Part shown: positions 4,001 to 63,746 of the stretch, in pieces
Layout of the letters: the number at the start of each line of letters is the position of its first letter
Position numbering within the stretch: the first letter of the stretch is position 1
From: Macrostomum lignano
Lineage: Eukaryota
Direction: 5' to 3'
DNA length: 64,000 nucleotides
NCBI GenBank assembly: GCA_002269645.1
Contig: NIVC01001413.1
Span: forward strand, 186,001 to 250,000
Notes under the pieces: model-generated
What the model was told of the DNA's origin: nothing
The model's database searches: none
What the model saw: only the letters and a program-made list of their open reading frames with translations
Translations under genes and position numbers: made by a program

Positions 4001-4480
4001 GCCAGATGTCCAGCTGTGATGCGGAAAAAATAGTCGACGAATATTACAAGGCTGCGTAAGAACGCACAGCAAAAAATCGGATGCGGCCAAATTAGTCACG
4101 AGCCAGTCTGTCGCGCTCAGAGCAGTGAAAGGTGACTGACGAAGTTCGCTTTTCAGACGTCTTCGACGCAGAAAAGCGACCAGAAGCAGCAGAGCGTTGC
4201 CAAGAGCGCCAAAAATAACTAAGCACCCGAGCACCACCAGTAGAGGTCGGAGACTGTGCAACTCTCTGAGTAGATCTCCGGCCGTCTCTGCCATTAGACT
4301 GCGAATTTCATTGGCTTCAGCCGTGTGGTTTAGACACTGGTAGAGCCGCAGCAGCCGTGTGGGGTCCATGCCATCTTCACCGACTCGCGAATCCGGTGTC
4401 CCGAGAATGCGTAAGCACGATGTCTTGTTCATGTTCAACGCTTGCACGGCTATCATGCTGAAAACCGACGAAATGATCAT
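1051..4480 (-). CDS. Rhodopsin-family neuropeptide GPCR (NPY/NPF/PrRP receptor-like), 3 exons, about 445 aa
   Basis: Exons 4480-3908, 2637-2158 and 1335-1051 join at GT-AG sites in phase 0/0. Motifs: TM1 GALGN, TM2 NLAASD, TM3 CKVVNALPGVNLFVSTFTITAIAIDRC, TM6 LAWLPLSIFN, TM7 HPLLYGLLNENFRREL. The exact start ATG is uncertain. Confidence 0.9.
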
Positions 4481-6915: not shown

Positions 6916-8175
6916 TGAGCTGCAAACGCTGGAAAAAAATAAGCTATAAGATGCTGGTCAAGAAATAATCGCCAAGATTTCAAAGCTCACGAGAGGATTT
7001 GCTAAGATTAATGTGTTCAAAGGAGAATTCTGAAACGCAAAGACTCGAAGGGGAATACATATTGTTATCAGGCGTAAAGAGTTTGATATTTGGGCTACTC
7101 GATATTCTGCTTTAAACATCCTCATCTCTCATGTACACGGCTTTTACATGCTGAGTTTCCTGACAGTGTGTATTCCTTCCTTTGCTCTTTACGATAAAAT
7201 TGGATACGGTAATATCTGACTCGACGAAATTCGATATAGAATTGCAAGATAATAATGTCTATAGAAAATCAGCTTACCCTATAGAAAGAGTTTTACAACT
7301 TAGGGTCAACGAGTTCGGGAAAAGATTTAATTGGAAAAACTTCCAATGCATTTTATTGCTAAGAAATTCTTTAAAGTCATTTTTCCATCCGTGTTTATAC
7401 CGATTGGGGAAGGCAAACTTTGTAGTACCATCGATATAAGCTTTGGCTCTAATAAATATTTTTGTTTAAAATAAAAACCAGACTGTTTATATTCGGGTTG
7501 ACCTCATTAAAACGAGTAGTTCTCATTACCACTCTCATCAAGAAAAGAAAGAAAATAAGCACTGTATGAGCAATTTTTCTGATTGCATTTAATCAGATAT
7601 TAAATAAACCAATTTAGTCTTTCAATGCCTATCGTTATGATTAGATCTTTTAGGAGAATGTTTCAGGACAATGTTTATTGTAATGCGTCATTCCAAAAAT
7701 AACTACTTAAAGTAAATATGCTTGAAAAAGATTTTTATTATTTAAAATCCAAATCGGCTTTGACCTCTTTGACCTCTTTGAAAGGTAGAAATAGTATACA
7801 TTAACGTTTTTGCAAACATAGGAGCTATCGCTAGTTAATCATTGGTTTTTCACGTCAGTTAGGGTAGGATATGTGATATTTAAACAATTAAGTAGCAGAT
7901 CGAGCAAAATTCAAAATAAATTTTGACGCACCTTCGAGAAATATTTACTGTATAGTCATGTGATTATTTATCATCCACATAGATTAGATATGCATACATT
8001 TAAGAAAGTCGAGTCGCTCGATTCTGGCACAAGTTGACAGCTAAGCGTGTTGATCCTCCGAAATTTGATCTGTTTGATCGCAGGTGGATCACTGCTTGGC
8101 TTTTTCTTTCTGAAAATTAAAATAAACAACTTGTGATTGATTTTTGCGTTACTATAAGCAAGAGATTCTGTTGAT

Positions 8176-8465
8176 GTCGCTCTGATATGCCAGCGGCCCA
8201 GGCTCGATTCCAAGTGCAGTCACATTAATTCGAGGCTAAATTGGAATCTCGGCTTGGCTCTACTCGTGAGACTAACGTCTTTGAGGGCCAACCCCCAAGG
8301 CACAGTGAAGTGTACATGCCTAACGATAAATAAAGTTAGGGCCGATGTACACTCCTGTGTGAGTGTGTGCCTGCTCAATGGAGTCGGCGGAATGGGCAGT
8401 AATGCCTCTCGATGTTTGTGTCACGATGCCACACCTCAATGCACACAGCCCCTGCCTCTAAAAAT
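8176..8465 (+). mobile_element. tRNA-derived SINE, family A (5'-eroded copy)
   Basis: B-box-like GGCTCGATTCC plus a body shared with five other copies in the window. Confidence 0.85.
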
Positions 8466-8600
8466 CTTTAACAGCTTAAGGTCAATTCGACTGGAAGCAC
8501 CAATTACGTCCAATTCATGCATATTCCTTGGGGCTCCCTGGGATAATGGGGATAACAACAAGGATTTCGTATGAACTGAAGACTGCAGAATGGTCTTTAT

Positions 8601-9920
8601 GGGAGTACGATATTTGCTAGCAGGAAATCTGCTAGCCTAAATCTGCTAGCCGAAATCTGCTAGCCGAAATCTGCTAGCTGAAATCTGCTAGCCTAAATCT
8701 GCTAGCCGAAATCTGCTAGCCTAAATCTGCTAGCCGAAATTTTCTAGCCGAAGTTTGCCAGCCGAAGCTTGCTAGCAGGAAATCTGCTAGCGGGAATTTG
8801 CTGACCGAACTTCTTGGCACCGGTGTCAAAAGATTGCTTGTTTTCTGGCAATGGTAATGCGTAGTTTTGGCTAAAAAATTCAGAGAAGTGGGTAAAAAAT
8901 CCCAAATATTTTATAACTAAAAGCATCAGCATCAGTTCAAGTGCTTAGAAAGTCAGTTTGTCATTGTGGGGGACAGAATACTCTCAAGTCGCAATCAGAT
9001 AGCTCGTAGTAGGACAGCAGTTGAATTCCTTACTAAACTGTCATGGCTTAACGTTAGCAGAGAAGGCTATAAAAAGTTATTCCAAAACACTGTACATTTG
9101 CTAGGTACATTGAGCCCTATCACCTGATCCTTGGTCTGGGGGAATGAGTTGGATGAGTCCAATGAGCGGCACAACAGAAAAAGTAGACAAAATTCACTTG
9201 CCTACAGTTTCTGTCCTGATTGAGGTACAAAGTTGAGACTATACTTTGTATTTAGACAAAGAATGACTCAATGAAGAATTGTATCAAGTTTGAAGTCAAT
9301 CGCTGTACGTGGAGCAAACTTATGGCAGCTGAAAGTTAGTCAATTTTAAACCCCTTTCACACATCTGTCCAGTGGCCAGGGAGAGAGGCGGAGGTTGGGG
9401 TGGCTGTCTCGCTGACGAAAAGCAGACTAACTTTAAAAGTACACAGTGCCGTTCAGAATTAACTTCGAGACTCGAAACTTTACACGATTGTGTCCAAATA
9501 GTTGAAAATGGATTGTGTCCAATTTGAAGAGGATTCGTAAAAGTGGAGCGACGCTATAGAGGATTTAGTGAAATTCTTGCGAAACTGGACAAGCAAATTG
9601 TCTCAAAGCTAATTACAACTTTCCGAGTTCGACTAGCCAAATTGCTGCTTGCCGGTTTTGGTTGGATTCTCGTTAGCAGATTTCGGCTAGCTAAATACTC
9701 GCTAGCAAAATTCCTGCTAGCAAGCTTCGGCTGGCAAACTTTGGCTAGCAAACCTCGGCTAGCAGATTTCGGCTAGCAGGTTTCGGCTAGCAGATTTCGG
9801 CTAGCAGGTTTCGGCTAGCAGATTTCGGCTAGCAGATTTCAGCTAGCAGATTTCGGCAAGCAAATTTCTCGCTAGCAAACTTCGACCATCAGATTTCTTG
9901 CTAGCAAATTTCATAGACCC
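8601..9920. mobile_element. Non-autonomous Foldback/Mutator-like DNA element, about 1.3 kb
   Basis: Inverted arms (8601-8800 and 9690-9920) built of 14-bp GCTAGC-containing subrepeats, with GGG termini. Degenerate 9-bp TSD GGTCTTTAT (8592-8600) / GGTTTTTAC (9921-9929). Absent from the paralogous site at about 17640. Confidence 0.8.
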
Positions 9921-9959
9921 GGTTTTTACATCTCTTTCACTAACAATATAACCTCTCAC

Positions 9960-11418
9960 CTCTTTAGAATTCCCAGACAGAGCGATAGCCAAGATCCCTG
10001 CGGCTGCAGTGGCAATTCCAACTCCAACTGCAGCTCCCAGGGCTCCTTTTTCCTGCCATGTCATGCCGTCCTCATCCGGGCTGGCCTTGGCTCGAATCCG
10101 ATGCGTGCCGTTCCAGCAGTTGTCAGTGAACAGTCCGTAGTCGCTGCCGCACGAGTCGAACAGGTCCTTCAGAGTGACGCCGGGATCGACCTTGCCAACC
10201 TGCCGGATCAGTTCCCAATCGCGAATGTCTCGTCGAATGATTTTAACGATTCGGCATTCGCCTTCGCGGTATCTGGCCCGATAGCTGATGTCGTCGTTCG
10301 GACCACCTGGAGCCGGAGGTGTTACAGCAATAAATTTTAACAATGAGCACTAGAATTTGCCCTGGTAACGGGAGGTACACTCGTATTACCAGCGTTCTAT
10401 GAAGTTTTTTGGAAGGTCGAATCCCTACGAGATAAGACATTCCAGTTTTTTAATACCAAACTGTCAATATCTAATTGTCAAGGCTTCAGTTATACATCTA
10501 CATGCTTCTATATGCTTGTTGAGTTCATTTTTAAACTTCTGGAAGTAGGAAAAGCGAAAGTTCTGTGTGCACTCTAAATGCATTTTTGCAACAATGCACT
10601 GCATCGCTTAAAAACTAATCATCAAAGAGCGTTAACGGTTCTCCATTTGTTGCGTTTTTCATACTACTATAGCAGTTTCCTCAATTTTGAGTTGATGAAC
10701 TTACAGAGTCGCTTTGAACCAAGCAAATGCCGAATTCGGCTGTCAAATTACTGTTCATCGAACGTGGGGTTTACCACCAGATAATCCATATTGAACTTCT
10801 GATTATCTTTTAACCTAAATTTTGATCTAGGTAGTGCTCCATATTGATTAGTTAAATGAGTTACACTCTCATCGATGTATCAGGGCTACATTTTGTAAGA
10901 CGGAAAGACCATATACATAAAAGTTAATATACAAGTTCATTATATGCTAGGTGTTTTGGGTCGCAAAATCCACCCGTACCGTAGATGTTAAGGATCAAGA
11001 CCTAGGATTATAACATTCCATTATTTTTTTATTAGTTGATTTTACCTGCTTTTTGGCAACTCTGTGCAAATATAGAATTCGTCATGACTCTAAATAAAGT
11101 TCAAAGAATAAAAGTTTAAACACGCATAAGGCCATAGCAAAAGCCAAATCAAATCAAGTATCAAACCGTGCAATCATCGTATATATGCGACGGAAATAAC
11201 GACGGATATGCTACCCGAAACTCACCCTTCTCAATCAGATAGAGCCCACCGTTCTTAGTAGTAACAACAGCCGCCTCGTGAACAAAGCCGTGAAGGGCAA
11301 CGGACTTGTTGCCCGCAGAATACAATGGTCGCTTGTAGATGCCAACTTTAATGACCACTTGGTCTAGGTCGATGCCGCAGTGCTTTCTACGAAGCTGTCG
11401 TTTCCGCTTGTCCGCCAT
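9960..11418 (-). CDS. Permuted NlpC/P60 (LRAT/PPPDE-like) His-Cys protein with C-terminal hydrophobic anchor, paralog 1 (about 180 aa)
   Basis: Exon 1 11418-11226 (MADKRKRQ...GFVHEAAVV...YLIEKG) joins in phase 1 to exon 2 10306-9960 (...DYGLFTDNCWNG...GALGAAVGVGIATAAAGILAIAL SGNSKE). A GTGAG follows; the true C-terminus is uncertain. Confidence 0.75.
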
Positions 11419-14400
11419 CGTCTAAGCAAAATCAAATTAATATTTTATGGTTTTCTTTGTCTCTGAAGATTGAGGTCGGAGAGCTTGATATGTTAGTCCA
11501 TGCTTTCCTGTAGTTAATATCGTTTGGAAATTGGCATAGAACTGGTGACTTGTTTTCATGGGGCGCTTTACAAATTTCCTATTAATTCTCTAGTTGGCTT
11601 CTTTAACGGACAATAGTAAAGCGGTATTAAAAGTTTAGGCATTGTGGCAAAGCGGCAGTAAAAAGTTGCTGACTATGTTAAATCGGCGGTAGCTATAGCG
11701 GTAGGTATACAACTCAAACTGTTTCTCAAGTGTCAATCCAGCTATGTATGCATCTAGCAGTTAAATCAAACTAACAAAGCAAAGAAACGGGGCCATCACA
11801 ATGCTAAGCTAGTGAGCTACTAATACTAACAAGTAGACAATCTACTCTTATTCGAAAAATATGGAAATAAAAAGACGGTAGATAAAGTAGAAACTGTGAA
11901 TTTGTATTTTTTTTAAACTACAGAATTTAAGCAACAATTAGCATAGTCACCAAATTTTACACTGCTAATGTAGATGATGCAGATAAAAAAGTTTTCAATA
12001 CGTACATCGTTTTCACTTGGGTGAGTGCATCCGGTACCACAATATTACGAGCTTATGCCGAGCACACATCCTTTGAAAAATATAGATTGGCTTTAGAGGC
12101 ATATTTACATGAGCGAGATGTTAATGTTGCTTAGTTGCAATCAGACTGTCACAACTCTAATATGGCAATGGAAAAATAAATTTATTTTTAAGGGAACTGT
12201 ACTGGTCATAATTTCGGTATTGCGCTGCTAAAACAACCGAGTCTGAGTGAATCTCTCACCACCGTTGCATCTGGGAATCTGTGCCAGACGTATAGTTGCC
12301 GCAGCCGCACTGCATTTATGTTTAGACTGATGTGGCTAACGTTCCATTTGGGTAACTGGTTGCGAAAGAACATGGCCAATGTTACCTTCTTCTTCTATTT
12401 CTTCGGGTCACGGACATTGTAGCTAGACGTAGCTAATAGGACCGGGTGCCTAGCACCATGCAGTCAGGGCGCTAACTCTGCGGGGGCTGTTGCTGCTGCT
12501 TTGAAATAGTCCCTGGCGATTCCCTATCTATCACCAGCGTATGTGCTTGCTTCAGCGGTCGCCGGAGCGGATGTGACATTTAGGACGGTGTAACTACGTC
12601 GTCGCTTTCGGACTCCTGCGGCGGCTGCGGCGGTGACGACGGCAGCTGCAGATTTAGTGGTGGCGGAGGCTCGCTAAAATATCATCTGATCGACAGTGGC
12701 TTGCACGACCGTTCGATTGTCAACCAACTCTGGCCGCCCGATATCCACACTGTCCTGTTTGGAGCTGAAAAGCATTTTTGGTCTACTGACGCTGGAACAA
12801 CCGAGAATCGATTTGGCGTGTTAAACAGCTGAACGTCGACACCACCGACATCCATTCACCTTGGCTGGTGCACAACACAAACTGTGAGTTGGCGACACTG
12901 ACGAAGTAGGTCATTGTAACCGTTTTGCCAGGTCAGCAGCGGCTCACTGAATGAGGTCGGCAAAGTTAAAACGCTATACGAGCCGTACACCTGACAGACT
13001 TCATTTTTTATGGCTTACCTATACCGCCGCGGGTAGCTGCATGCAAATTACGGGCGATTTCAGATGCATGCGGGTTGTGTTTAACATAGGCTAGCACGCA
13101 CTGAATGCATTTCATTTGTGCTTGCGCCCTGTTGCTGACTGTGCTAGAACTGTTGCTGGTAGCTCGAACCTCCACTGCGGTGGTCGTTTGGTCGGTTAAA
13201 CAAAAAACTGCTCGTTCAAAAAGTCTACATAGTTTGCCCCTTCCTTTCTTCCTTTCTAAAACTCACTTTTCATAAATAAAGCAGTAGCTCTGGTCAGGTA
13301 CGCCAGTGTAACATATGAAGGCCAAACGAGATGCAGCCCCAACTGTAACAAATTGAGCCATAGACGTTAGAGCAGATCGTAGTCCGATCGTAGCTACAAC
13401 GGTACACAATATTAGCTGTTTTTTCAACGCCAGAAGGCCCCAAAGAGAAATGGTCGGCGGTGGGCCTTCTCTACAGATAAACCTCAGATTTCCTTCTGCC
13501 TGGAAGGTGCACACACTGGTACCCATGTACATAATGTCGTCATAAAGCCTGAGAGCTGTACATTCAGGCTGCTGTGGTTGCTGTTGCTGCTGCTGTTACT
13601 ACAGCCATTCTTTAGCGGTGTGGTGGTGTTGTTGCTGTGGAAGAGGGTGGCGTTGTTGCTGTGGAAGAGGGTGGCTGGTTGGCGCTCGCACACGCCATAC
13701 AGATCGCCGCGCTGGGGACACTCTTAATTTCAATTTGGGTCCAGTTGCGCATGGCCTTCCAATCAAATCGCAACAGTTATGGAGTACTGCGATGCTAATA
13801 AATGCATGAAAGCTGGATGTCTTCTGACTGATATTGTTGTCGCTAGTCAGAAGAGTGTACTCAGTGCACGGCTCCATAATGTGGGTTCTGGATAGCGGGA
13901 AACTCGTTATTACTGGCGCCTATTTTTGTGTTATATTGAATCGTAGTATGCCGTTTTTTAGTTGTTTTAGTTGTTACTCTTGTTGTTGTTGTTGTTGTTG
14001 TTGGTATTGGTGTCTTTATTGTGATTCCGATTGAAGAAAATAGGCAATGACTTTTTTATTTTTTGAGGGAGAAATATACAAACTTGCATAGATTGCGATG
14101 GGGACAGGAGGACAGGTCCTAACCCCACTCACTGATCGCCGATTGAGTCGCTCAATTCGACAGCTTCAGGCAGACACGAGCATCATTTTCAGCGCTCCGG
14201 GCTGCTTCAAATACGACGCATGCCAGTTGCAGCACAGACATTCCACGGCATGCGCGACGATTGTCTGGCTTTTCACCAATGGAGGCATCCGTTGCATCGT
14301 CGGAATGGCAGTAGTATTCTGGGCCGTCCTATAGGAAGCGGCCGCAGCGCCTTCTTGAACAGCCGCCTGTCAACGACGTGAACAGAGGGAGCGACGGATG

Positions 14401-15420
14401 CAATTTGATTTGGGGCATGAATGCACCAGAATATTTTCGGACAAAATATTTTCGTCATCGAAAGCAGAACCAATAAAAACAAAAATACTCTTACCTGGCT
14501 GTGGCAAAAGAACAGTGCTTTTGCTGCTGAGCCTACTTGGCGAAACTGTTGGTGACTGTAGCTGCTGCTGGGCGCAACAGCAGAAGCGACTTAATCCGGT
14601 CGCAGCGGCGGCAGTAGTCCCAGAATCCTGGGCAGCGGCAGCGGCGGCGGAACATATGGCTTTCTCCAGCTTATTCAACGAGAAGTGAAACTAGCGGTTG
14701 AACGAGCATAGCGCATTATATGATTCATGTATATGTATATTTATGTATAGAAAGCGTATATAATCCTACTAACTACTATAGAGGGGATCGTATAGTCTAT
14801 GGCTGCTGAAAAAGTCTCACACGAGAAGCTGTGCATCTTTAGTAAGACTATGCTACAGGCAGCTCCACTTCTGCCCAATAAATTGTCTATGGTCGAATCT
14901 ATGCTGTACATCTTGCTTTTAAAGTTTAAAAGCTCTGTCGATATTTTCAGGGAACGTAAGGAACGAAAAGTACAATTATAAGGAACGCTGTACAGCCTGT
15001 GTGAGAGTGTGTGTGTCGAGTGCGTACTTTCGTACAATATTGGCAACGAAAAGAAGCTACATGTACAAGAAGCAATAATTTCAGATTAAATTTTAAAATA
15101 TATTAAATAAACCCATTCAATTCGCCAATGGCCTACACTGTTACCATGAAATCTTTCAGGAGAATCAATCTACGAGCTTAGGTTAAATTTTTAGAGGATT
15201 TTTTTCTCAAATTTCCATGCGTCATTCCTAAATTATCCACTTTGAGTAACAAGTTTGAAAGGAATTTATTATTTTAAATCTGAAACAAATTTGATCTCTT
15301 TATAACCCTATGAAAGGTAAAAAATATTACAGGAGGTATCGATAGTCGATAGTTGTTTTTTATTTAAAATGCAAAATGTTGGATTTTAAAGGAATTGGAT
15401 TCCAAAGGAATTTGGAACTT

Positions 15421-16452
15421 TGTCCCAAAAGTTCCCGGAACGTCCAACGCAGCTCTCCAACGGAGCCATGATGTCCCACGCCCTTGGTGTCAAATGAAAG
15501 GAAGTTTTGTCACGAAGAAAATGAAGTTAAAAGCATGTTGATATCTGTTTTTATTCAGGAGCTGCAGCAAGAAACGTGCGCGAAGGTCAGGGGTAGTGTT
15601 ACACAACCTCAAAAATCTATGGCAATGATTTTAAACAATAAAACACAGAACATTTCATACCGTTGATGAATCCTTGGGACATGCACCGATTCAAAATTCA
15701 AAGCGAATCGTCAAGCTCAGCCTGCGGCTTCTCCACGTAGTCCCCATTCAGCTGAATACACCTCTGCCACTTTGAAAGCATGCCGTCGATGGCCTGGGCA
15801 AAAACAGTTCGAGGCATTTCATGATGCAGGATGACGCGACGAGTGAAGCCTTCAAGTTCACTGCGGTTCTGGAACACCGGCTACGAATTTTCTGGACCGT
15901 CTCTAAAGCGTTCGATCCATTCGTAAATGGCAGTTTTTTTCAGGCTGTTCTCACCGTGGATGGAGAATAAGTGGTCAGAAATCTTGGCTCCACTCCATCC
16001 TACTGACCAAAGGACAAAAACTTGACTTCGCTGACTTTCGAGGCTCTGAAGAGAACCCAATTTGGCAAAGAGATTTCAAGTTGAAAGCAAGCGCTTGGTA
16101 AGAATTATCTGCACTCGCGCAAAAGCTCAGATTAGCTTAATGAGCATTTCTGCTTTTTCCATAGACACTACCACGTCTTTCTGAGACGTTAGTAGCACGA
16201 ATTCAAAATGAAAATATCCAAAAACAAAGATGAAAAATTATTTTCAGTGATATGTGAGGTTGTGTAACAGTACCCCTGACCTTTGCGCACGTTTCTTGCT
16301 GCAGCTCCTGAATAAAAACAGATATCAACATGCTTTTAACTTCATTTTCTTCGTGACAAAACTTCCTTTCATTTGACACCAAGGGCGTGAAACATCATGG
16401 CTCCGTTGAAGAGCTACGTTAGACATTCCGGGAACTTTTGGGACACCCCTCG
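15421..16452 (-). mobile_element. Internally deleted mariner (Tc1/mariner) element with about 190-bp TIRs
   Basis: Inverted repeats 15421-15612 and 16256-16452; the right end reads TA|CGAGGGGTGTCCC on the minus strand. Minus-strand remnants: GENSLKKTAIYEWIERFRDG (N-terminal HTH) and MLSKWQRCIQLNGDYVEK (mariner C-terminus). The catalytic core is missing. Confidence 0.88.
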
Positions 16453-17204
16453 TATGTCAGTTATTTAACATCAATAAAAAAAATTAAAGCACTGCGAACA
16501 GAGGACACAATAATTTGAAGGTCTGAAGTACCATCGATAAATCATTACTATATAGTCATGTCTCTATTAGAACCACATAGATTACACATGCATACATTTA
16601 AGAGAGAGTAAAGTCGCTCTACTAGACACAAGTTTGCAGTTAAGCGTATTGATCCTCCGAGTAATTTGATTTGTTAAACCGCAGGTTGATCACTGCTTGG
16701 CCTTTTCCTTCTGAAAATTCAAATTCGTGGCTTGTGATTATATTTTCGCGTTTACTATAAGCAAGAACCATACGACGGGGGTGCTGAGATGCCAATGATC
16801 AAGACATAGTCGTATGTTAGCTATTGCTTTATAAACCCGACAGAGCCACAGGAGGTGCAGCTAAGGATGTCAAGGGCTTAAGCTACGGACCCTGAATAGT
16901 ATAGAATGTCTTCTACTATTGCACGATTAGGTTTAGTAGTAGATCTACTATCCAGGGGTTCGTGGCTTAAGCTAAATGGCAAACTGCAAATTGGAGTCAG
17001 CACTGGCACTAAAAAGCTCTGGATATATCTATATACCTCGAAAAGGCTTAAAAAGACGTCAATCAAACCGAAAAAAATCCAATTTTCCTGCTGATATGTA
17101 AAACCTTTTCGAAAAAACTTGCTGTCCCTACAGCTGAATTAATTACTAATCAAACGGATTGAATAAACGATAAATAGTTGGTCGGGAGGAGTCGATTGCC
17201 GTGG

Positions 17205-17510
17205 AGGTGCGGTGTAGCCCAGAGGGCTGGCGCTGCGCTCTAATGTGCCAGCGACCCAGGCTCGATTCCAAAGGCAAATCCAAGGGCTAAATTGGAATCT
17301 CGGCTTCGCCCTACTCGCGCAGTTAACGCCCTTGAGAGCCAACCCCCCAAGGCAAAGTGAAGTTTACATGCCTAACGATAAATAAACTTACGTACGCATC
17401 TAAGCGCTTGTGTGCCTACTCAGGGGAATGGACAGTAATGCCTCTCGCCCGTTGTGTGACAATATGACTTATAGAGTTCGACAGGCTGCACACACACCCT
17501 GCCTCTGAAA
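17205..17510 (+). mobile_element. tRNA-derived SINE, family A
   Basis: A-box-like TAGCCCAGAGG, B-box GGCTCGATTCC and the shared body; carries an internal deletion. Confidence 0.85.
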
Positions 17511-17663
17511 AAATCATTAAAAGTAACTTTGAGGTCAATTCGACTGGAAGCACCAATTGCGTCCCATCCAGGTGCAATCTTTGGGGGCCCCTTGCGATAA
17601 AGGGGATAATAAAGATTTCATGTGAGCTGAAGACTACTAATGGTTTTACATCCTTTGTCTCAC

Positions 17664-19183
17664 CTCTTTAGAATTCCCAGACAGAGCAAAAGCCAAGATC
17701 CCTACGGCTGCGGCAATTCCAACTCCAACTCCAACTTCTACGGCTCCTTTTGCCTGCCAGGTTATGCCGTCCTCATCCGGGTTGCACTTGGCTCGAATCC
17801 GATGCGTACCGTTCCAGCAGTTGTCAGTGAACAGTCCATAGTCGCTGCCGCAAGAGTCGAACAAGTCCTCCAGAGTGATGCCGGGATCGACCTTACCAAT
17901 GGGCCGGATTAGTTCCCAATCGCGAATGTCTTTTCGAGTTATTTCAACAATTCGGCATTCGCCTTCTCGGTATCTGGCGGGAAAGTTGATGTCGTCGTGC
18001 GGGCCACCTGGAGCCCGAGGTGTTATAGCAATAAAATTAACAGGGAGAACTAGAATTTTCCCTGGTATCTTGACGTAACAACCGCGTTCTATGGTATCTT
18101 TTTGAAGGTCGAATCCTACGAGACGAGAAAAGATTCCAGTTTTTTTTAATACCAAACTGTCAATATCTGATTGTCAAGGCTTCAATCAAACACCAACAAA
18201 AGCTGTATGTGCTTGATTGGAGGTTGAATAAACCGGTACAAGCTTGTTGAATTCCTTCTTTAACTTCTGGAAGTGGGAAACGCGAAAGTTCTGTGTGCTC
18301 TCTAAATGCATCTTTGCAACAATGCACTGTATCGTTAAAAACCAATCATCATGGAGCGTTAATTGTGCTCCAATTTAGCGTTTTTTCAGACTCCAGCAGT
18401 ATTTTTCTTCAATTTGAGTTGATGAACTTACAGAGCACCTTGAAACCAAGCAAATGCAGAATTCGGCTGTCGAATTACTGTTCATCGAACGTGGGGTTTA
18501 CCTCCAGATAATTCAGTTAACTTGTGATGATCCTTAAAGCTAAAGTTTAAGCTATAGGTAGTGCTCTGTATTGATTGGTTGAACGAGTTACACTCTCATC
18601 AATGCATCAGGGCTTACATTTTGTGGGACCGAAATGCAATACACAATAAATTTATATAACGTTTTAAGTGCATTGCAAGCAAGGTCTTTTGGGTTGAAAA
18701 AGATCTTGGTTCTTTAATAATCAAGGTCTATAGGATTATAATGTTCAAAGCCTACAAGGTCTGTTACAGAATGAACTATAACTATTTTTATATTAGTTAA
18801 TTTTACTGCCTTTTGGCAACTCTGTGCGATTAGTTTGGTCATGGGTCATGGCTCTAAATCGAGTTATAAAATAAAAGTTTTAACACACGTAGAAACCGAG
18901 CAAAGCCAAATAAAATATCAAACAATATACATGCGACTGAAATGAATGAAAGGATTCGTTTCTAAACTATAAAAAATATTACTCGAAACTCACCCTTCTC
19001 AATGAGATAGAGTCTACCGTTCTCAGTGGTAGCAACAGCCGCTTCGTGAACTAAGCCTAGAAGGGCACCAAACTGGCCCATAGAATACAATGGTCGCTTG
19101 TAGATATCCCCTTTGATGACGACTTGGTCTAGATCGATGCCGCAGTGCTTTCGACGAAGCTGTCGTTTCTCTTTGTCTGCCAT
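17664..19183 (-). CDS. LRAT/PPPDE-like His-Cys protein, paralog 2
   Basis: Exon 1 19183-18994 and exon 2 18007-17664, phase 1. VHEAAV and DYGLFTDNCW are retained, as is the hydrophobic tail. Confidence 0.75.
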
Positions 19184-19734
19184 CGTTCATAAACGCTCGT
19201 AAGATCAAATCTATAATGTTTTTATGTTCTGTGACTATGAAGATCGAGATCTGTTATAGCTTGGCTGCCGAATTCTGGTTGCCGAATTATGGCACAGAGT
19301 GACTGCTTGCCTTCGTCTTGCTCGCCCAACCGCCTGCGCTGTCTAAATAGTTCGCATGAAAGCTAGCAAGAAAATGAAAGTTATCGCCGAGGCCTATAGG
19401 AAGCAAGTTCGAGGCTTATGCTTCAGACCATAGACTAAAATAAACAGCTATTTATACCCGGTTTGGCCAATTGTACATTGAACATTGTACATTTTAACCA
19501 TAGAGAAATTTTGATTTGATGCAGTTTAGGAAAACGACTGTGTTAGGCATGGATGAAGGAATACATGCAGTGTATTCCTTCATCCATGGTGTTAGGTATA
19601 TAAGAATAAGTGGTTGTCTCTACTAATCCTTAATTTTTATCTGCAACGTTTTCAAGTTCAATATTTGTAACAAACCTGTGACGTTGACAGCGTCGGTTTT
19701 AAATCACAGTCGGAAGGCAAAGCTGTCTTTAGGC

Positions 19735-21045
19735 GGTAGAGAGAAGGAGAGAGAAGGAAAGAGAATTGGAGAGAGGTGGCAGGGAGAAGGAAAGAGAATT
19801 GGAGAGAGGTGGCAGGGAGAAGGAAAGAGAATTGGAGAGGTGGCAGAGAGAAGGAAAGAGAATTGGAGAGAGGTGGCAGAGAGAAGGAAAGAGGAGAGAG
19901 GTGGCAGAGAGAAGGAAAGAGGAGAGAGGCGGTAGGGAGGAGAGAGAAGGAGAGAGGCGGCAGGGAGGAGAGAGAAGGAGAGAGGCGGCAAGGAGAAGGA
20001 GAGAGAAGGAGAGGCGGCAGGGAGGAGAGAGAAGGAGAGAGGCGGCAGGGAGGAGAGAGAAGGAGAGAGGCGGCAAGGAGAAGGAGAGAGAAGGAGAGGC
20101 GGCAGGGAGGAGAGAGGAGAAAGGCGGCAGGGAGAAGGAGAGAGAATTGGAGAGAGGTGGCAGGGAGAAGGAAAGAGAATTGGAGAGGTGGCAGAGAGAA
20201 GGAAAGAGAATTGGAGAGAGGTGGCAGAGAGAAGGAAAGAGAATTGGAGAGAGGTGGCAGAGAGAAGGAAAGAGGAGAGAGGTGGCAGAGAGAAGGAAAG
20301 AGGAGAGAGGCGGTAGGGAGGAGAGAGAAGGAGAGAGGCGGCAGGGAGGAGAGAGAAGGAGAGAGGCGGCAAGGAGAAGGAGAGAGAAGGAGAGGCGGCA
20401 GGGAGGAGAGAGAAGGAGAGAGGCGGCAGGGAGGAGAGAGAAGGAGAGAGGCGGCAAGGAGAAGGAGAGAGAAGGAGAGGCGGCAGGGAGGAGAGAGAAG
20501 GAGAGAGGCGGCAGGGAGGAGAGAGAAGGAGAGAGGCGGCAGGGAGGAGAGAGAAGGAGAGAGGCGGCAAGGAGAAGGAGAGAGAAGGAGAGGCGGCAGG
20601 GAGGAGAGAGAAGGAGAGAGGCGGCAGGGAGAAGGAGAGAGAAGGAGAGAGGCGGCAGGGAGGAGAGAGAAGGAGAGAGGCGGCAAGGAGAAGGAGAGAG
20701 AAGGAGAGGCGGCAGGGAGGAGAGAGAAGGAGAGAGGCGGCAGGGAGAAGGAGAGAGAAGGAGAGAGGCGGCAGGGAGGAGAGAGAAGGAGAGAGGCGGC
20801 AGGGAGGAGAGAGAAGGAGAGAGGCGGCAAGGAGAAGGAGAGAGAAGGAGAGGCGGCAGGGAGGAGAGAGAAGGAGAGAGGCGGCAGGGAGAAGGAGAGA
20901 GAAGGAGAGAGGCGGCAGGGAGGAGAGAGGCGGCAGGGAGGAGAGAGGCGGCATGGAGGAGGAGAGAGGAGAGGCGACAGGGAGAAGGAGAGAGGAGAGA
21001 GGCGGCAGGAAGAAGGAGAGAGGAGAGAAGCGGCAGGGAGGAGAG
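19735..21045. repeat. Purine-rich (GA) compound minisatellite, about 1.3 kb
   Basis: Units such as GGCGGCAGGGAGGAGAGAGAAGGAGAGA. The long ORFs in six frames come from the repeat. Confidence 0.95.
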
Positions 21046-22589
21046 AAGCCCTTGCCCTCTCGCAATTATAAAATACATACGAAGTGAAGATTTTTGCCAA
21101 GTTTCAAACTAAAAGTTAGACTTTCTGCACTTCCCCGTCCTTTTGAAGCAGCCATCAGCAACAATGAGTTCATACTAGGGTCATGCGCGGACACCAAGGA
21201 CTTTGCTCCCCCCTTGCTCTTTGCTCAGTTAAACGTAGAAGAGATTACGGGACTGAATTGTCTCCTGCTATGCAAAATGTGCATTGATACATTTCTATTG
21301 TGCTCGGATAGAATCTTAAGGAAACCAAACCATTTCTCACTAAGGTTTCATGCCTCTTACCTCCCGCCAATCAGAATAGCCATGGAGTAGATGCTTTCTC
21401 AGAGTTTAAAGGAAACTCAGATACACACAATTACCCTCATCTCTCTCTCACTCTCACTTTGAAGGTCTTTCGACTTGGATTCTGTAATCCTGTGTGAGAA
21501 GCTTTCCAACAACAAGTTGCATACGTACATGTAGTTCTTTCATTTTTTAGTTCTTCTGTTAGAGAATTTTAGACCAATGGGATTCCCTATTTTGCATCAA
21601 AGAAAAGATCGCAATATGTTACGGATTGCATTTTAATCAGATATTGAATAAACGCATTAAATCTGGCGATGCTTACCCATTCATTATTATGGGATCTTTC
21701 AGGAGAATCAATGGTACGAGCTGGGTAAACTTTTTTAAAGAGCATTCTGTTTTTTATTCTTGATATTCAATGCGTCATTTCTCCAATATCTGCTTTGCGT
21801 AATATTTTTGAAATGAATCGTTTATTTAAAATCAAAATCGGCTGACATCTTTGAAAATTGAAATATTGTGAAAGGTAAAATATTACAAGATCATTTTTGC
21901 AAACAAGGCAGTTAACGGCAGTCCATCGTTGGTTTTCTTGTCAGATAAGTAAGGATGCAATTTTTGAGCGATTAATAACCAATATAGCACGAGATGCGGT
22001 GCGTTGGCGCTTTTTTAGTATCAATAATAGAGAAAAAACAAAAAAAACACAACGAACGGAGGATTTACTAATGTGAAATATGCATCGCATAGTCATGTCA
22101 GTATTAGATTACACATGCACTATACATATAAGACAGAGGAGTCGCTCGATATCACTTCAGAGACCGAAACTGGCACAAGTTTGCAGCTAAGCGTGTTGAT
22201 CCTCCGAGCAATTTGATCTGCTAAACCGCAAGCTGATCACTGCTTGGCTTTTTCCTTCTGAAAATTCAAATTGGTAAGAGCGTATAGCTTGTGAAATATA
22301 TTATTAGCAATAAATATATGCTAGGTGTCACTTCATGAACCTGAAAAATTCAGCAAAACATTTTTCACGCTTTTTTAGTGTACTGTATCAATCTCCATCA
22401 GACTCTCATCTCAAGCTGACAACAAATACCAGTAAGTCCGTGGACGACGAGTAAATAAGCAGGAGATGCAGAAGAAATCGGTGAAAGAGATGATTTAGAT
22501 TGAACTCTGAAGCCATATGGACAAGTGTTTGATGAAGACAGAGCCCGCCTTCGTGACGCACACGACGACAACGGGCAGAATTTATTTTT

Positions 22590-22826
22590 TTTATTAGAGG
22601 CAGGGGGGTTGTGTGCACCCTGGCGCACTTTAAGCGACTTAGGCACACAACCGGCGAGAGGCATTACTGCCCATTCCGCCGACTCCCCTGAGCAGGCACA
22701 CAAGCGCGCGGATACGTACGCAGGCACACACTCACACAGGAGTGTACAGCGGCCCTAACTTTATATTATCGTTAGGCATGTACACTTCACTGCGCCTTGG
22801 GGGGGTTGGCCCTCAAGGCCGTTAAG
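22590..22826 (-). mobile_element. SINE family A, 5'-truncated copy
   Basis: Matches the 3' two-thirds of the 41905-42265 copy and has an A-rich tail. Confidence 0.85.
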
Positions 22827-23060
22827 AACGGGCAGGAGGATTATGTCCATCTGGTGCGACTAAAGAACATCAAAAGACCCCACATCAAAAGCGAGCCAAA
22901 GGTGGAAGAATTAAAAGTAAGAAAGAAAGAAACACCGTTGGCGTCCCATCCAATCATTGGTATCATTAAAATTCCAGGAGATAAATGAATGATGATGGGA
23001 TTTCATGTGACCTCAAGGCTCTGTAATGGGTTCTACATCCTGTCCCCTGTGAAGTCTCAC

Positions 23061-24097
23061 CTCTTTAGAATTCCCAGACAGAGCAAAAGCCAAGATCCCT
23101 ACGGCTGCGGCAATTCCAACTCCAACTCCAACTCCTACGGCTCCTTTTTCCTGCCAGGTCATGCCGTCCTCATCCGGGTTGCACTTGGCTCGAATCCGAT
23201 GCGTGCCGTTCCAGCAGTTATCGGTAGCCAGTCCGTAGTCGCTGCCGCACGAGTCGAACAAGTCCTCCAGAGTGATGCCGGAATCGACCTTACCAACTGG
23301 CCGGATTAGTTTCCAATCGCGAATGTCTCGTCGAGTGATTTCTACAATTCGGCATTCGCCTTCTCGGTATCTGGCGGGAAAGTTGATGTCGTCGTTGGGC
23401 GAGACACCTGGAGCCGGAGGTGTTACAGCAATAAATTTAGCAAGGAGGGAGCACTAGAATCTACAGTGGTATCTGGACGTAACACTCGTATTCTATAATA
23501 TAATTATGAAGACTGAAATTGACGAAATCATTTTTTGTAACCAGACACTACATCGTTTGAAAGCTGTTCATCAAAAGACGTTAATTGTGCTCCATTTCGT
23601 CATTTTGTATTTTAAGCTAGGTAGTGATCCATATTGATTGCTTAAATGAGTTAAAGCAAGTAAATCAAGTACTGTATCAGTGCTACATTTAGTGGGTCAA
23701 AAAGGCCATAATGCACGTAAATTAATATATTAGTGTGTCATATTAATGGTCTTTTGGGTTAGGTCAAACATTTGAACAACCATAAGCCCAAACTGGTTTA
23801 TTCAAAGCTAAACCAAATAAAGTTTCTAATCTTATTGATGCGACTAAAATATCTGAGAACTCGTTTCTAAACTACGAGCGTAAGCTATGATACCTGAAAC
23901 TCACCCTTCTCAATGAGATAGAGTCCACCGTTCTCAGTAGTAGCAACAGCTGCTTCGTGAACAAAGCCGAGAACGGCACCAGACTTGCTGCCCACAGAAT
24001 ACAATGGTCGCTTGTAAATGTCTACTTTAATGACCACTTGGTCTAGATCGATGCCGCAGTGCTTTCGATGAAGCTCTCGTTTCTTCTTGTCCGCCAT
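23061..24097 (-). CDS. LRAT/PPPDE-like His-Cys protein, paralog 3
   Basis: Exon 1 24097-23905 and exon 2 23407-23061, phase 1, open frame throughout. FVHEAAV and DYGLATDNCW present. Confidence 0.75.
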
Positions 24098-25340
24098 CGG
24101 ATATGTAATATCGAGTTCAATGTTATGGTTCTTTTTCTCTGAAGATTGAAAGCGGAAAGCTGTGTTAGTTTGTGCTTTACTAGTCAATATCGCCTGGAAA
24201 TTGCATGCTTTTAGTTCCCTTTTACACAGTTGAACCACCCCACATGGAAAGAGGGGTCGGCGCTGTTAGATAGTGTACGTACACTAGCACTAAAAATAGT
24301 ACATATGCACATAAAGCTACATGCATATTCAGATCGAGAAAAGCAGACAAGGAGACGAAAGTCAAGAAATTTCATTGGAGTACATTGTTCGCGTACATTT
24401 ACGCTCGTACATACAGACAGACAGACAGAAGTAAGAAAGAGAGCAAGCAATATGTTCGTGCTTCGTAAAGCACATAAACCTAACCTACTCGCCTATGTCA
24501 GATATGCTAGCACAGTAAATGTTATAATCTGACATGTTTGAATCAACATAGACATTCGTTTGATAATAGAAAAAAAGATAACAGACTCGCGCCTAGTATT
24601 AAGTGAAAATTCATGGCTTTATTAAAAACGGGTTTAATGTATTTCAAAACGTTTTGCAATACTCTTCAGAAAATGGACCACAGATACGATTAAAAGACCC
24701 TTAGTTACTGATACTACTTTCGATTGGGCGACTGTCAGGAGTTTTTTGGATTATTTTGTTCGTGTCAAGAAATTAATTTTAGATGTAGTCGTACGAGTAT
24801 AAGCACCAGGGCGCCAGCACCAGGGGCGCCATATGCATATAGAGGACCGCACTAAAGCCTTGAGAATTTTCAAAGCAAAAATGCTTTTTAATACGCGTTA
24901 TTCACCATGAAAATAATTCTAAAAATATTTTACGCTTTTGAGTTATAAAATCAAACTTCTGTAGGAAACATTCACAATATACTAAATCTCTAAGATCTTA
25001 TTATACTCATATTCATGCATCTAAAATAGTTCATCTGTTGCGCAAGTTGTTATACGAGATGACAGTAGGTAGGTTAACGGGTGCAAGTTCAGGAAGAAAA
25101 CTTCATAATATGCGGTGAGAGTAGTGCAGTATGATATTATGCAATCGCTTTTAAGGTTACACGGTGCAGAAGGCAGGTATTCCCGTTGTGTATGAAAATC
25201 GGCCACTCATTTACGAGCGTAACAGCAATAGAGACGAAAAATCATTTTAAGAGTATTACATAACTTTGCTGAGAGTTTAATGTCTATATATTTAGAAACG
25301 TCAAACTTTAAATCATCTGAGAGCTCTCAGTCAACCAGCG

Positions 25341-26040
25341 ATGGCAGACGAACCGACAAGAGAGTTCAGACGAAAACACTCCAGTGTGGACCTGCAGCAG
25401 ATTGTGATCAGTCTTGACCTGTACAACCGGCCTCTGAACGGCAAGGGAGGCAAGTCGGTCACCTTATTCGGGTTTGTTCACGAAGCAGCAGGCTCTAAAG
25501 GGCGTTAATTGCGGGAGCAGAGCCAAGGTGAGATTCTAATTTAGCCCCAAAAATTAATGTGACTGCACTTGGAATCGAGACTGGATCGCTGGCACATAAG
25601 GATTGCAGCGCTAGACCAGTGAGCTACGGCTCCCCTCTTGGCTTTGGTGTTGGGCTGTTCTGCACTTTTAGATGTAGGCTGTATAGTTTTCCACTTCGAG
25701 AGTAACACTGAAGCATCCAAGTGAGATTATTAAAATACAACGCGCACTTTGCAGGCGTCAGCAAAGACTTTGACATCGACTATCCAGTTAGGTATCGCGA
25801 AGGCGAATGTCGCATTGTAGAAATTTCCAGACGCGACACTCACGACTGGATGCATATCAGGAAAGCGAAGTGTTCAACCGAGCGTCACACTGGAGGACCT
25901 GTTCGACTACTGCGGCAGCGACTACAATCTGCTGGCGGACAACTGTTGGAACGTTGGCGTCCACAGGATGCGGACCACGTCCTGCCGTGGCGATCGGTTT
26001 GTTGACCATGGCCCTGTCGGACAGTTCTAAGGAGAAGACG
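25341..26040 (+). pseudogene. Inverted, diverged fourth paralog of the LRAT-like family (pseudogene)
   Basis: MADEPTREFRRKH...GFVHEAA is cut off by a SINE at 25491. Exon 2 (25755-26040) reads VRYREGECRIVEIS..., frameshifts, then VTLEDLFDYCGSDYNLLADNCWN, has a deletion, and ends at a GTAAGG donor. Confidence 0.85.
25491..25637 (-). mobile_element. SINE family A, 5' (tRNA) half only
   Basis: Reverse strand reads GGGAGCCGTAGCTCACTGGTCTAGCGC...GTCTCGATTCCAAGTGCAGTCAC. Confidence 0.85.
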
Positions 26041-27224: not shown

Positions 27225-28329
27225 TCATTTATTACCGCGCAAGCCCAGCTGTGGCCCAAGCACCGCCAGTGATCTTTTAGCCGGAGCTAGGCTGTCAGTA
27301 ACCCCGGCGTGGCCTCGTTTCCTAGCCATCCTGTTGTCTCCGTCAGCAGCTGGGTTCTCCGCTGACGGCTTGCGCACCACCAGAGCCCGCTCTTTGGCCT
27401 CCTCGCTGTGACTGTACGGACAGCGGTGCCCCCGATCGCATCGACCAGATAGGAAGCGTCTGCACAGCGGTATCCGTTTTAAACCGCTGCTTCTGCTAGC
27501 GGAATTAGTTGCCGCTTCTATCGGGGTCACGTGATGCGCTAATACGGCTAACTTCTTACGCTCGGCTTTATGGTACTCGGTTACAAATGCGGATTCGTGC
27601 TCAGCTGATGCGGCCGCAAAACTTGGCAATAGATTCGAGGAACTACTGGCTTGTTGCTGCTGCCGATTGCTGTTTTGCTGCTTCAAGTCTGTACTATCCA
27701 ATTCACTGTCTTCGAGTTCGACGTCTATTTCAACGAATCCGTCGCTTTGATTGTCGTCTGTGTCCTCGTCGCTGGGGCTGTTGCTATGGTCAGAGGCAGA
27801 CTGAATCAGACCAAAACTGTTGCTGCCGCTAATAAGTTTGCTGCTTCGTTTCTCTTCCGTTGATTTGCTTTCCTCATCTTCAGCTGTTGCAGTGTCTGAG
27901 TTGTGCTCTGGGCAGGAATGTTGAACATATTTAATAACTCAGACTACTTGATAATCACGAGTAAATTTATCCAATGTACATTTAGCTACCAAAGTAAAAG
28001 GACGATACTTTTTTCAATATTTCTTTTTCCATTTTACCTGTGTTATCTGCAACAACTCTGGGGCGCTTTTATAATGACTCTGAGGGCCGTAGAGTCGAAA
28101 TTTTAAATTTCACACCCAGAACATAAAATTTAGAAAATATGAAAAGCAAAAAAAACACATCTCGCTTACCATCATCATATTTAGCATCATCAAAGTCTCC
28201 ATCACTGTCGCCTGCAATTTCGCTCGATTTTTGTTTTGTACTTTTATAATTTTTCACTGCCTCAGCAGCCTCGGGAGCATCGCCTTCGCTCTCGCTGCCG
28301 CTACTATAAGCTACTAGCGCGGATGCCAG
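27225..28329 (-). CDS. CCCH zinc-finger protein (about 280 aa), with no in-frame ATG at its apparent N-terminus
   Basis: Exon 28329-28170 (LASALVAYSSGSESE...) joins in phase 1 to exon 27907-27225 (acidic region, then CRRFLSGRCDRGHRCPYSH, a C-x7-C-x5-C-x3-H finger). Confidence 0.75.
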
Positions 28330-39893: not shown

Positions 39894-40730
39894 AACAGCA
39901 AGGAAATTCAGCATTTCACGGATCACTACTGTACCTACTGATACGAGTAATATGGGATTCGCATCTGCTACGCTCGTATCAGCCTTACAGATCTAGAGAA
40001 CTTTAACGAGATTAAAGATTCGAATTAAAATATCAAGGTCATCCTAGTTGACTAATTGATCACGTGCTAAGAGTTAGTTGCTGCATAGGTCCAGTGGGTT
40101 GTGAGTTTTGGGTTTTGCTTCTATTTTTCTGCCGAAACTGCCACTGCCAAGCATGAAGCACGTGATACGTTTAATATAATGATCGAGCTAATTTGTAGCA
40201 ACTTCAACAGGCATTTGGTATTTTCGGTGCATAGAAAAAAATAGTTTGTTTTCGATCGAACACAAACGGAAATCAACGATTAATGATGGAAGTTGGTTGC
40301 AGAAGCTAAATAGCGCGGTCGAGTTGCAATAATTAACCCTAATTGTTCTTTCACATATGAAGCTATTATAGTCAGGAAATTGATTAGCCCGAATTTTGTT
40401 GCTTTTTATCCCGACAGAAAATTAAACACTGCACGAAAGCGCAAAAAAATTAGACCCGTTTTAATGACGCAGAAAATATTTTTTGTTTCACAAATTGCCC
40501 TGTTTACACGCGAAACAACGCAGATGTCATAAATTTTGAGCGGCCTCTGCAACGGGTGTATAAATATAGGAATGGAAACTGTCAGGCCGGAGCCAAGCGA
40601 TCCTGTTCGTTAAACATAGGCCTTTACCTTTTGAACGAATTTCGGCAGTCAAGTAAGTTCAATATCGATATTTCTCATGTCAAGATTTGCATTAGGTAGC
40701 TTCGACCATAGACCAATTTAAGGTGGCTGG

Positions 40731-62997: not shown

Positions 62998-63746
62998 CTA
63001 GTGACAGTTCATCGACCATCGACCCGAAGTAGCGGCAGCGGCAGCAGCGGCAGCGGCAGCAGCGGCAGCGTAAGTGGGCGGCCAGAAGGTCAGAAAGCCG
63101 CCAGGATTGACCGGCGCCTCCTCAGCCGGAGCCGCAGTCGAAGATTCCACATTGGTTGATGAAAACTGCACCTGCTGGTTTTGATGAGTATAATTATACT
63201 GCTGATTAGGCTGGCTTGTGAAATATTGATGCTCATAGCGCTCAGTTTGAGTTGTCAGCTGCTGCTGATGCTGTGGCTGCTGTGGCTGCTGATAGTACGT
63301 GGCAGGGTAGCCAAAATTGTAGACAGGGTAGGCTGCTGAACTGTACACCCATTGCTGCTGCTGCTGCTGCTGCTGCTCGATAGAGTGCGGACAGTCGAAC
63401 GGAGAACACGAGCAGCAGTGCTCAGTCTGTTCAACCGTTGGCTTGGTATCTCCGACAGTTGCAGAGATTTTCAGCGCCTTCGGCGAAGACAAACCCGAAG
63501 AAGAAGAATTCGATGGAACGTCGTCCGATGGACGACGTTTTGCATTCGCCTTTTGACGCGAGCTGAAAATTTCATTCTGCGGTCGAAAGTCCGGAGTTGG
63601 ATGATCGTGGCAGCCTTTGGCCTGGAAGTACACCATCCCGTTGTTGGCGTGACGCCAAAAGTGCGTGACGGGGAAGCCGCCCTGACCGCGGCACTGGCGC
63701 AGGTAGAGCACGCCATCGGTGCACTTCGGGTTGGGGCAGCGGGAGC
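62998..63746 (-). CDS. gcm: Glial cells missing transcription factor, last exon (5' exons lie beyond the window)
   Basis: Acceptor at 63747 followed by SRCPNPKCTDGVLYLRQCRGQGGFPVTHFWRH...YFQAKGCHDHPTPD, the C-terminal half of the GCM domain, then a Q/Y/A-rich tail. Confidence 0.93.

Follow-up and report, generated by a model that had tools for sequence, protein, structure and literature searches.

A tandem gene family of Macrostomum lignano encoding candidate tail-anchored, LRAT/PLAAT-like thiol enzymes with a putative role in spermatogenesis

In LRAT and in the PLAAT proteins (PLAAT/HRASLS 1-5) the elements of the fold occur in permuted order, the His-bearing strand preceding the Cys-bearing helix; the strand that comes next carries a polar residue, and an Asn-Cys pair at the N-terminus of the helix follows a Y-x-L sequence. 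The core of the PLAATs is about 130 amino acids (aa) long; C-terminal to it come an anchor rich in Ala and Gly and a basic tail with KQ at its end. Such a tail anchor is typical of PLAATs, and some mammalian PLAATs are also testis-enriched. The PPPDE/DeSI proteins (PF05903, Peptidase_C97) likewise have the permuted papain-like order, a Y-x-L-x-x-x-N-C helix and a long connection from the first strand to the His strand; to our knowledge they are without a C-terminal membrane anchor. Here we describe a gene family of the flatworm Macrostomum lignano which shares the fold order, motifs, anchor and tail listed for LRAT and the PLAATs and the order, helix and long connection listed for the PPPDEs, and whose layout is that of PLAAT1-4. 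The family was analyzed in a 64-kb stretch of contig NIVC01001413.1 (assembly GCA_002269645.1), the whole of which is called the window below. Reading of both strands and a motif scan revealed four copies in this window, three of them intact (g1-g3) and one dead (g4).

On the strength of sequence comparison and structure prediction we assign the family to the circularly permuted NlpC/P60 superfamily, in which it appears closest to LRAT/PLAAT (the H-box/NC proteins) and not to PPPDE. The placement is based on an AlphaFold model, on structural comparison with Foldseek, in which the 2A protein of Aichivirus was the top match in the PDB, and on the register of profile-profile alignments. In the reading that we favor, and to which we give about an even chance, the proteins are tail-anchored thiol phospholipase/acyltransferases that act in spermatogenesis and form a divergent LRAT/PLAAT-like branch without a Pfam entry of its own. 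A canonical NlpC/P60 amidase was considered and rejected because the family has His47 before Cys128, whereas in NlpC/P60 (PF00877) the Cys helix comes before the His strand.

When the window was searched by tblastn with the g1 protein, the copies were recovered with expect (E) values from 2e-76 to 4e-15, and neither this search nor the motif scan found a further copy beyond g1-g4 in the 64 kb. The copies carry the motifs F/LVHEAA and Y-x-L-x-T/A-D-N-C-W and the basic N-terminus MADK(R/K/E)KRQLRRKH; His47, Asn127-Cys128 and the polar character of position 63 are preserved in all of them, as are the basic N-terminus and the C-terminal transmembrane helix. Each protein has about 186 aa, is without a signal peptide and consists of a domain of about 130 residues, the C-terminal helix and a short basic tail. 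The helix is Ala/Gly-rich, with a mean Kyte-Doolittle hydropathy (19-mer) of 2.2-2.3 as compared with 2.1 for the anchor of human PLAAT3. The four paralogs with His motif, Cys motif, basic N-terminus and C-terminal helix that the initial annotation had described were thus found again. Its gene models lacked a third exon of 21 nucleotides (nt), and g3 is intact, g4 alone being dead. Nor are g1 and g2 unannotated, as had been stated: the spliced product of g1 is 100% identical to GenBank PAA68182.1 (BOX15_Mlig017153g1) and that of g2 is 100% identical to PAA68183.1, both entered as 'hypothetical protein'. The window's own genes bear the identifiers Mlig017153 and Mlig015703. The exact product of g3 has no entry in the protein collection searched.

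The fold model was obtained with AlphaFold from an alignment of 12 sequences (an earlier one with four near-identical M. lignano sequences gave an unusable predicted local distance difference test score, pLDDT, of 44). Its core has a pLDDT of 85-95. The model shows a strand at residues 21-31, a strand at 46-54 opening at His47, a strand at 59-64 with Glu63 and Lys64, strands at 82-86 and 96-101, a helix at 110-117, a helix at 128-139 opening at Cys128 and a long helix at 148-175, which is the membrane segment. The permuted papain-like arrangement, in which a beta-hairpin with the His comes before a nucleophilic Cys at the N-terminus of a helix, is thus predicted for the proteins. The order of the secondary-structure elements in PLAAT3 is the same as in the model.

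Our statements on Foldseek searches of the PDB cover the 50 best matches listed. Among these there was no significant match; the first was the H-box/NC protein 2A of Aichivirus A (E 0.3; TM score 0.44-0.48, normalized to the target) and the second a Josephin-like clippase. The 2A H-box/NC proteins of picornaviruses are described as homologues of PLAAT3 in a preprint (bioRxiv 10.1101/2024.04.06.588386). In a library of predicted viral structures two mimivirid proteins, A0A6N1NL70 from Tupanvirus soda lake and A0A2P1EKP2 from Moumouvirus australiensis, matched with E values of 2e-6 and 5e-6 (root-mean-square deviation 3.0-3.3 Å over about 130 columns, 18-20% identity), and these are the sole statistically strong structural neighbors. 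The likeness is one of predicted structure alone, and unlike the family the mimivirid proteins are much longer and multidomain (535 and 366 aa), one of them being named F-box/FNIP repeat protein. Other matches in that library were picornavirus polyprotein fragments, with E values from 7e-3 to 0.2, and, at E 0.6, a protein of Pithovirus that bears the name lecithin retinol acyltransferase.

At the level of sequence, Pfam scans of g1-g3, of all members of the family and of their consensus gave nothing above noise, and no threshold was reached; PF00877 (NlpC/P60) had no match in the scans of g1-g3 and of the family members. Searches of the PDB by sequence, with single sequences and with a profile, gave only chance matches, such as TM1112 via the word 'GxxYxIEKG'. 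In control scans human LRAT scored 140.8 bits on PF04970 and DESI2 scored 157 bits on PF05903; the human PLAAT3 and DESI1 sequences used for comparison are identical to PDB entries. With hhalign the family gave a single match of 92-106 columns to an alignment of PLAATs, with or without LRAT, in a register that puts His47 on His23 of PLAAT3, position 63 on His35 and Cys128 on Cys113. The score was 26-27 as compared with 12.6 +/- 2.6 for a null of shuffled columns (maxima 19.5 and 22), a distance of about 5 standard deviations, and 19 when the target was reversed. The PLAAT profile is shallow, the search with PLAAT3 having returned close vertebrate orthologues only. With human PLAAT3 as the sole target, the alignment covered the NC helix and also the membrane anchor. 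The sequence Y121-x-L-x-x-D-N127-C128 is aligned to Y-K-L-T-S-E-N-C of PLAAT3; in place of E-H-F the cluster has W-N-G, and other relatives have x-H/N-A. One paralog, P0007, is named 'LRAT domain-containing protein' in UniRef, a name that presumably derives from the PROSITE profile for the LRAT domain. Two structural proposals of the initial annotation have thereby gained in substance: the permuted papain-like fold with His before Cys, through the model, the H-box/NC proteins found with Foldseek, the hhalign register and the UniRef name, and the PLAAT-style C-terminal anchor, through the helix at 148-175, its hydropathy and its alignment with the anchor of PLAAT3. In the literature we found nothing on Macrostomum together with LRAT, and the locus tags were found neither in the paper texts searched nor in the supplements of PMC5816591 and PMC12896417.

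A profile search through 1.84 billion representative proteins yielded nine proteins at E<=1e-3, which include the M. lignano paralog groups Mlig012613, Mlig004476 and Mlig025840; the other five come from ENA or Logan assemblies. Seven further family loci were found by a scan of JGI metagenomes. A word-indexed homology search with the 12-sequence alignment gave no additional members, and a DNA-pattern scan of viral contigs with a distant subgroup of the family found no relative there. Since several of the metagenome relatives have introns, since one of their contigs carries animal-type tails of long interspersed nuclear elements and since their GC content is 0.32-0.41, they are eukaryotic. They too occur in tandem arrays, with three copies on one contig (L001, from ENA ERZ27297344; 1374-2042, 3777-4094 and 5428-5898) and two on another (L002; 3229-3633 and 5098-5679). 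None of the relatives from outside Macrostomum has a C-terminal anchor, and several start with a segment resembling a signal peptide. The sequences compared therefore suggest that the membrane anchor is a trait of Macrostomum; as a whole the family looks small and patchy.

His47, Lys64, Tyr121, Asn127 and Cys128 are invariant in the alignment of 12 sequences. In an alignment of 21 sequences just four residues occur at position 63: Glu in the cluster as well as in two of the M. lignano paralogs, Asp in P0007, and either His or Gln in the relatives from outside Macrostomum. Glu, Asp, His and Gln are also the range of the third, His-orienting residue in NlpC/P60 triads. Motifs of the family's own are R-P-L, HEAAVV, L-I-E/H-K and DNCW.

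The GenBank annotation of the assembly was built solely from genome-guided RNA-seq transcripts and TransDecoder (Wudarski et al., 2017, PMC5730564). The three-exon models of g1 and g2 therefore represent spliced transcripts, which for these two genes removes the possibility, raised in the initial annotation, that there are none. Two further genes, Mlig000256.g2 and Mlig000256.g3, have coding sequences of 561 nt, which fits 186 aa, and encode proteins 98% identical to that of g1. Tables S6/S8 of Brand et al. (2020, PMC7336406) class both as 'Testis' and 'germline_FACS', and the positional RNA-seq values given in that work are 0 and 8 reads in the first column as against 116 and 200 in the second. 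The paralog Mlig025840.g2 is also entered there as 'Testis', with higher expression in octets than in isolated worms, and in situ hybridisation with probe RNA815_21744 is recorded as testis-positive (Brand et al., 2020). Both published primers of this probe map without mismatch to the locus encoding P0017 (Mlig025840.g2); the first lies immediately before the start codon, the other inside the gene span near the 3' end. Because the near-identical copies and the paralog are classed as testis genes, g1-g3 themselves are probably expressed in the testis as well. At L016 (7170-7895, minus strand) Mlig025840.g2 adjoins a gene with a match to the Fic domain (PF02661).

The unit of duplication in the cluster is the whole gene with its introns; for example, 9954-11487 and 17658-19263 match at 76%. 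Pairwise synonymous divergence (dS) between g1, g2 and g3 is 0.19-0.27, and the ratio of nonsynonymous to synonymous divergence (dN/dS), a check which the initial annotation had proposed, is 0.30-0.38: the intact copies are under purifying selection that is somewhat relaxed. A second locus of the same assembly (NIVC01000029.1; the stretch compared is L015) is collinear with the cluster at about 94% identity over more than 9 kb and holds counterparts of g3 and g2; the g4 pseudogene is there too, and its frameshift with it. For g1, NIVC01000029.1 has an annotated copy of 98% identity outside the stretch compared. Assemblies of M. lignano are highly redundant, owing to extra large chromosomes (Wudarski et al., 2017, PMC5730564). 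Since the counterparts of g2, g3 and g4 are present at this locus, the array and its dead member predate the duplication that gave rise to it. The array and its lesions being common to both loci and the paralogs having a dS of 0.19-0.27, we regard the array as old, stable and not currently expanding; its initial description as an expanding cluster has to be given up. The data support an old tandem family with one old casualty. Between g2 and g3 lies a GA-rich minisatellite of 1.3 kb (19738-21040; periods 28, 85 and 381), which has long spurious open reading frames (ORFs) in all frames and in which the duplicated locus is only about 81% identical.

Several results weigh against the reading of the family as testis phospholipase/acyltransferases of the LRAT/PLAAT type. 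PF04970 (LRAT) has no match at E<=10 in g1-g3, in 16 members or in the consensus, the hhalign probability for PLAAT/LRAT is low (7-10%), and the solved structures of PLAAT2/3/4 are not among the 50 best Foldseek matches. The family has HEAAVV and DNCW(N/H) where the LRAT family has HWA(I/L)Y and NCEHF, and the cluster has Glu in place of the second His of PLAAT/LRAT. Unlike PLAAT/LRAT, it also has a loop of about 15 residues between strand beta1 and the His strand, with its own R-P-L motif, and its conserved Lys64 and Trp95 are no features of the LRAT family. The expression data are those of 98%-identical duplicated copies and of a 36%-identical paralog. Finally, with relatives that have no anchor and in part bear a signal peptide, the ancestral substrate need not have been a cytosolic membrane lipid.

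Unlikely in our view, though to be taken seriously, is that the family consists of cysteine peptidases or isopeptidases tethered to a membrane, be it PPPDE/DeSI-like deSUMOylases, deubiquitinases or generic NlpC/P60 amidases, which would cleave protein or peptide conjugates, and no lipid ester, at the surface of an organelle. The Cys/His chemistry and the permuted fold class would be the same, and the long loop from beta1 to the His strand is more PPPDE-like than PLAAT-like. One paralog, P0005, matches PF05903 (PPPDE) with residues 179-214, the Cys helix, at E 0.08, but the score of 13.2 bits is far under the cut-off of 29.2 bits. With hhalign the Y-x-L-x-x-x-N-C helix of DESI1 and DESI2 aligns with a score of 19-20 as compared with a null of 11.9 +/- 2.1; this match comprises only 23 columns round the Cys and leaves the His strand unaligned. 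The PPPDE profile consists of two sequences and is thinner than the PLAAT profile, so that the contrast between PLAAT and PPPDE is suggestive, not decisive. The solved PPPDE structures 2WP7 and 3EBQ are both absent from the 50 best Foldseek matches in the PDB, which are headed by an H-box/NC protein, and the tail anchor also argues against a PPPDE. Of the two kinships put forward in the initial annotation, that with PPPDE is the weaker one, as the NC helix alone aligns.

The family might also make up a third lineage of permuted NlpC/P60 thiol enzymes, distinct from both LRAT/PLAAT and PPPDE, scattered in marine invertebrates, where some members would be secreted or soluble and encoded in tandem arrays, and with structural relatives in mimivirids. 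In Macrostomum this lineage would have acquired the tail anchor and have been recruited to the male germ line, to dismantle or remodel organelle membranes in spermiogenesis, as PLAATs do when they rid the fiber cells of the lens of their organelles, and it would evolve under sexual selection. We consider this rather improbable.

Improbable, too, is that the proteins have kept the fold and are not enzymes, in which case they would serve in germ cells as scaffolds bound to membranes or as factors that remodel them, comparable to the LRATD proteins or to the 2A H-box/NC proteins of picornaviruses. This reading would fit the Aichivirus 2A protein as best solved structural neighbor, the Glu that stands in place of the canonical second His, and the loss of His and/or Cys from copies 2 and 3 on L001 (W...NS and H...NF). 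Relatives of the latter kind may, however, simply be pseudogenes; NlpC/P60 enzymes accept Glu, Asp and Gln as third residue; and His47, Asn127 and Cys128 are invariant in all intact M. lignano members, which are under purifying selection, and in the majority of the distant relatives. Very improbable is, lastly, the defence role suggested in the initial annotation, in which the proteins would be immune effectors subject to birth and death, such as antibacterial amidases or phospholipases that attack membranes: the array of tandem genes and its pseudogene would fit it, and the signal peptides and tandem arrays of the invertebrate-like metagenome relatives would suit secreted effectors, but the M. 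lignano proteins are tail-anchored and without signal peptide, the available expression data point to testis and germ line, with one paralog up in octets versus isolated worms, the array with its pseudogene is conserved between the duplicated loci without quick turnover, dN/dS is below 0.4, and nothing was found that supports such a role.

For the tail-anchored phospholipase/acyltransferases that we favor, we infer catalysis, lipid substrate, membrane orientation and role in sperm formation, the mechanism being derived from homology and from the conserved residues. The catalytic domain would be in the cytosol, with the C-terminal helix as tail anchor. Cys128, with which the last core helix begins, would be the nucleophile and His47, at the start of strand beta2, the general base; residue 63 on strand beta3 (Glu in the cluster) would orient His47, which in turn would activate Cys128. 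An acyl-thioester would be formed from a glycerophospholipid of the membrane, and the acyl chain would then be passed to water (phospholipase A1/2 activity) or else to an acceptor with an amine or hydroxyl group. Expression in testis and germ line makes the remodelling of membrane lipids during spermatogenesis a likely role.

The genes g1 (8089-11418), g2 (16690-19183) and g3 (22237-24097) are all on the minus strand and have three exons each, separated by canonical GT-AG introns. Exon 1 of g1 (11226-11418; minus strand, as are all features of g1-g3 given here) extends from Met1 to the first base of codon 65 and matches PAA68182.1 at 100%; it encodes the basic N-terminus and strand beta1, contains the codons of His47 (11278-11280) and Glu63 (11230-11232) and ends at the donor GTGAGT. 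Exon 2 (9960-10306, donor GTGAGA) encodes strands beta4-5, a helix, Asn127-Cys128 and the transmembrane helix, with the codon of Cys128 at 10116-10118 and the transmembrane residues 153-176 at 9972-10043. Exon 3 (8089-8109) encodes KEKAKQ and the stop codon in 21 nt, and because of it g1 reaches to 8089, beyond the range of 9960-26040 initially assigned to the cluster. The exons of g2 are at 18994-19183 (exon 1, with the LVHEAA variant, a 100% match to PAA68183.1), 17664-18007 (exon 2, with the Cys motif and the transmembrane helix) and 16690-16710 (exon 3, KEKAKQ and stop, 21 nt). Those of g3 are at 23905-24097 (exon 1), 23061-23407 (exon 2, which is intact, has one additional codon after the splice site and is 99% identical to P0002, a protein encoded at the duplicated locus) and 22237-22257 (exon 3, again KEKAKQ and stop in 21 nt). 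Intron 2 of g1 is unusually long, 1.85 kb as compared with 0.8-0.95 kb in g2 and g3, and a 14-bp satellite forms two oppositely oriented arrays in it (8615-8802 and 9674-9912).

The pseudogene g4 (25341-26040, plus strand) lies head-to-head with g3 and is the most divergent copy, with about 58-68% identity to g1 over the aligned segments. The remnant of its exon 1 (25341-25496, plus strand) ends directly after FVHEAA, the last 15 or so codons and the splice donor being replaced by an interspersed repeat (25491-25627). The remnant of exon 2 (25755-26040, plus strand) is spread over three reading frames by two frameshifts and lacks about 25 codons of the segment that would link the Cys helix to the membrane helix; the DNCW motif is kept, as the initial annotation had said of the Cys motif. 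The repeat is inverted relative to its copies in intron 2 of g1 (8182-8289), g2 (17214-17340) and g3 (22645-22824), which with it make up a set of sequences of about 110-180 bp that are 75-80% identical. A tRNA origin of the repeat was rejected, ARAGORN having found no tRNA-like sequence anywhere in the window, and a recent death of g4 is ruled out by its divergence, the highest of all copies, and by the same lesions at the duplicated locus.

Downstream of g1 the window contains two exons of a rhodopsin-family G protein-coupled receptor (2152-2958 and 3881-4480, minus strand; Pfam 7tm_1 with E 1e-9 and 7e-13). A pair of 212-bp inverted repeats, 93% identical (15421-15632 and 16234-16445), encloses short ORFs (15698-16060) that resemble the remnant of a transposase N-terminus; Pfam gave no match to them. 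Just past g4 there is an ORF for a CCCH zinc finger (27228-27701, minus strand, E 2e-4). A fragment of a non-LTR (long terminal repeat) retrotransposon (37175-39941, plus strand), with RVT_1 at E 2e-9 and an endonuclease at E 9.5e-4, the latter under the Pfam cut-off, lies within a GC-rich island (GC 0.59 at 38-40 kb). Exons of an aromatic amino-acid (histidine/phenylalanine) ammonia-lyase are found at 46275-46685, 47098-47430 and 51027-51563 on the plus strand (Lyase_aromatic, E 7e-49 to 5e-24), with a purine-rich (A+G) minisatellite of about 2.7 kb in an intron (about 48256-50968). A GCM-domain ORF (63001-63711, minus strand, E 4.5e-14) stands at the end of the window.

Chemistry and architecture of the family are those of a known enzyme class, and the family is not a new kind of system; it is a lineage-specific reproductive gene family, and the tandem array with its one old pseudogene reflects a turnover typical of reproduction-related genes. 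For flatworm 'hypothetical proteins' that no domain library recognizes there is now an assignment of the fold and a functional hypothesis. The LRAT/PLAAT-like sequence space is widened by members with Glu as third residue, by secreted or soluble relatives in invertebrates and by structural neighbors in giant viruses. In M. lignano, a hermaphrodite model for studies of sexual selection and regeneration in which RNA interference and transgenesis can be used, the family offers a testable candidate among the rapidly evolving testis-specific genes.

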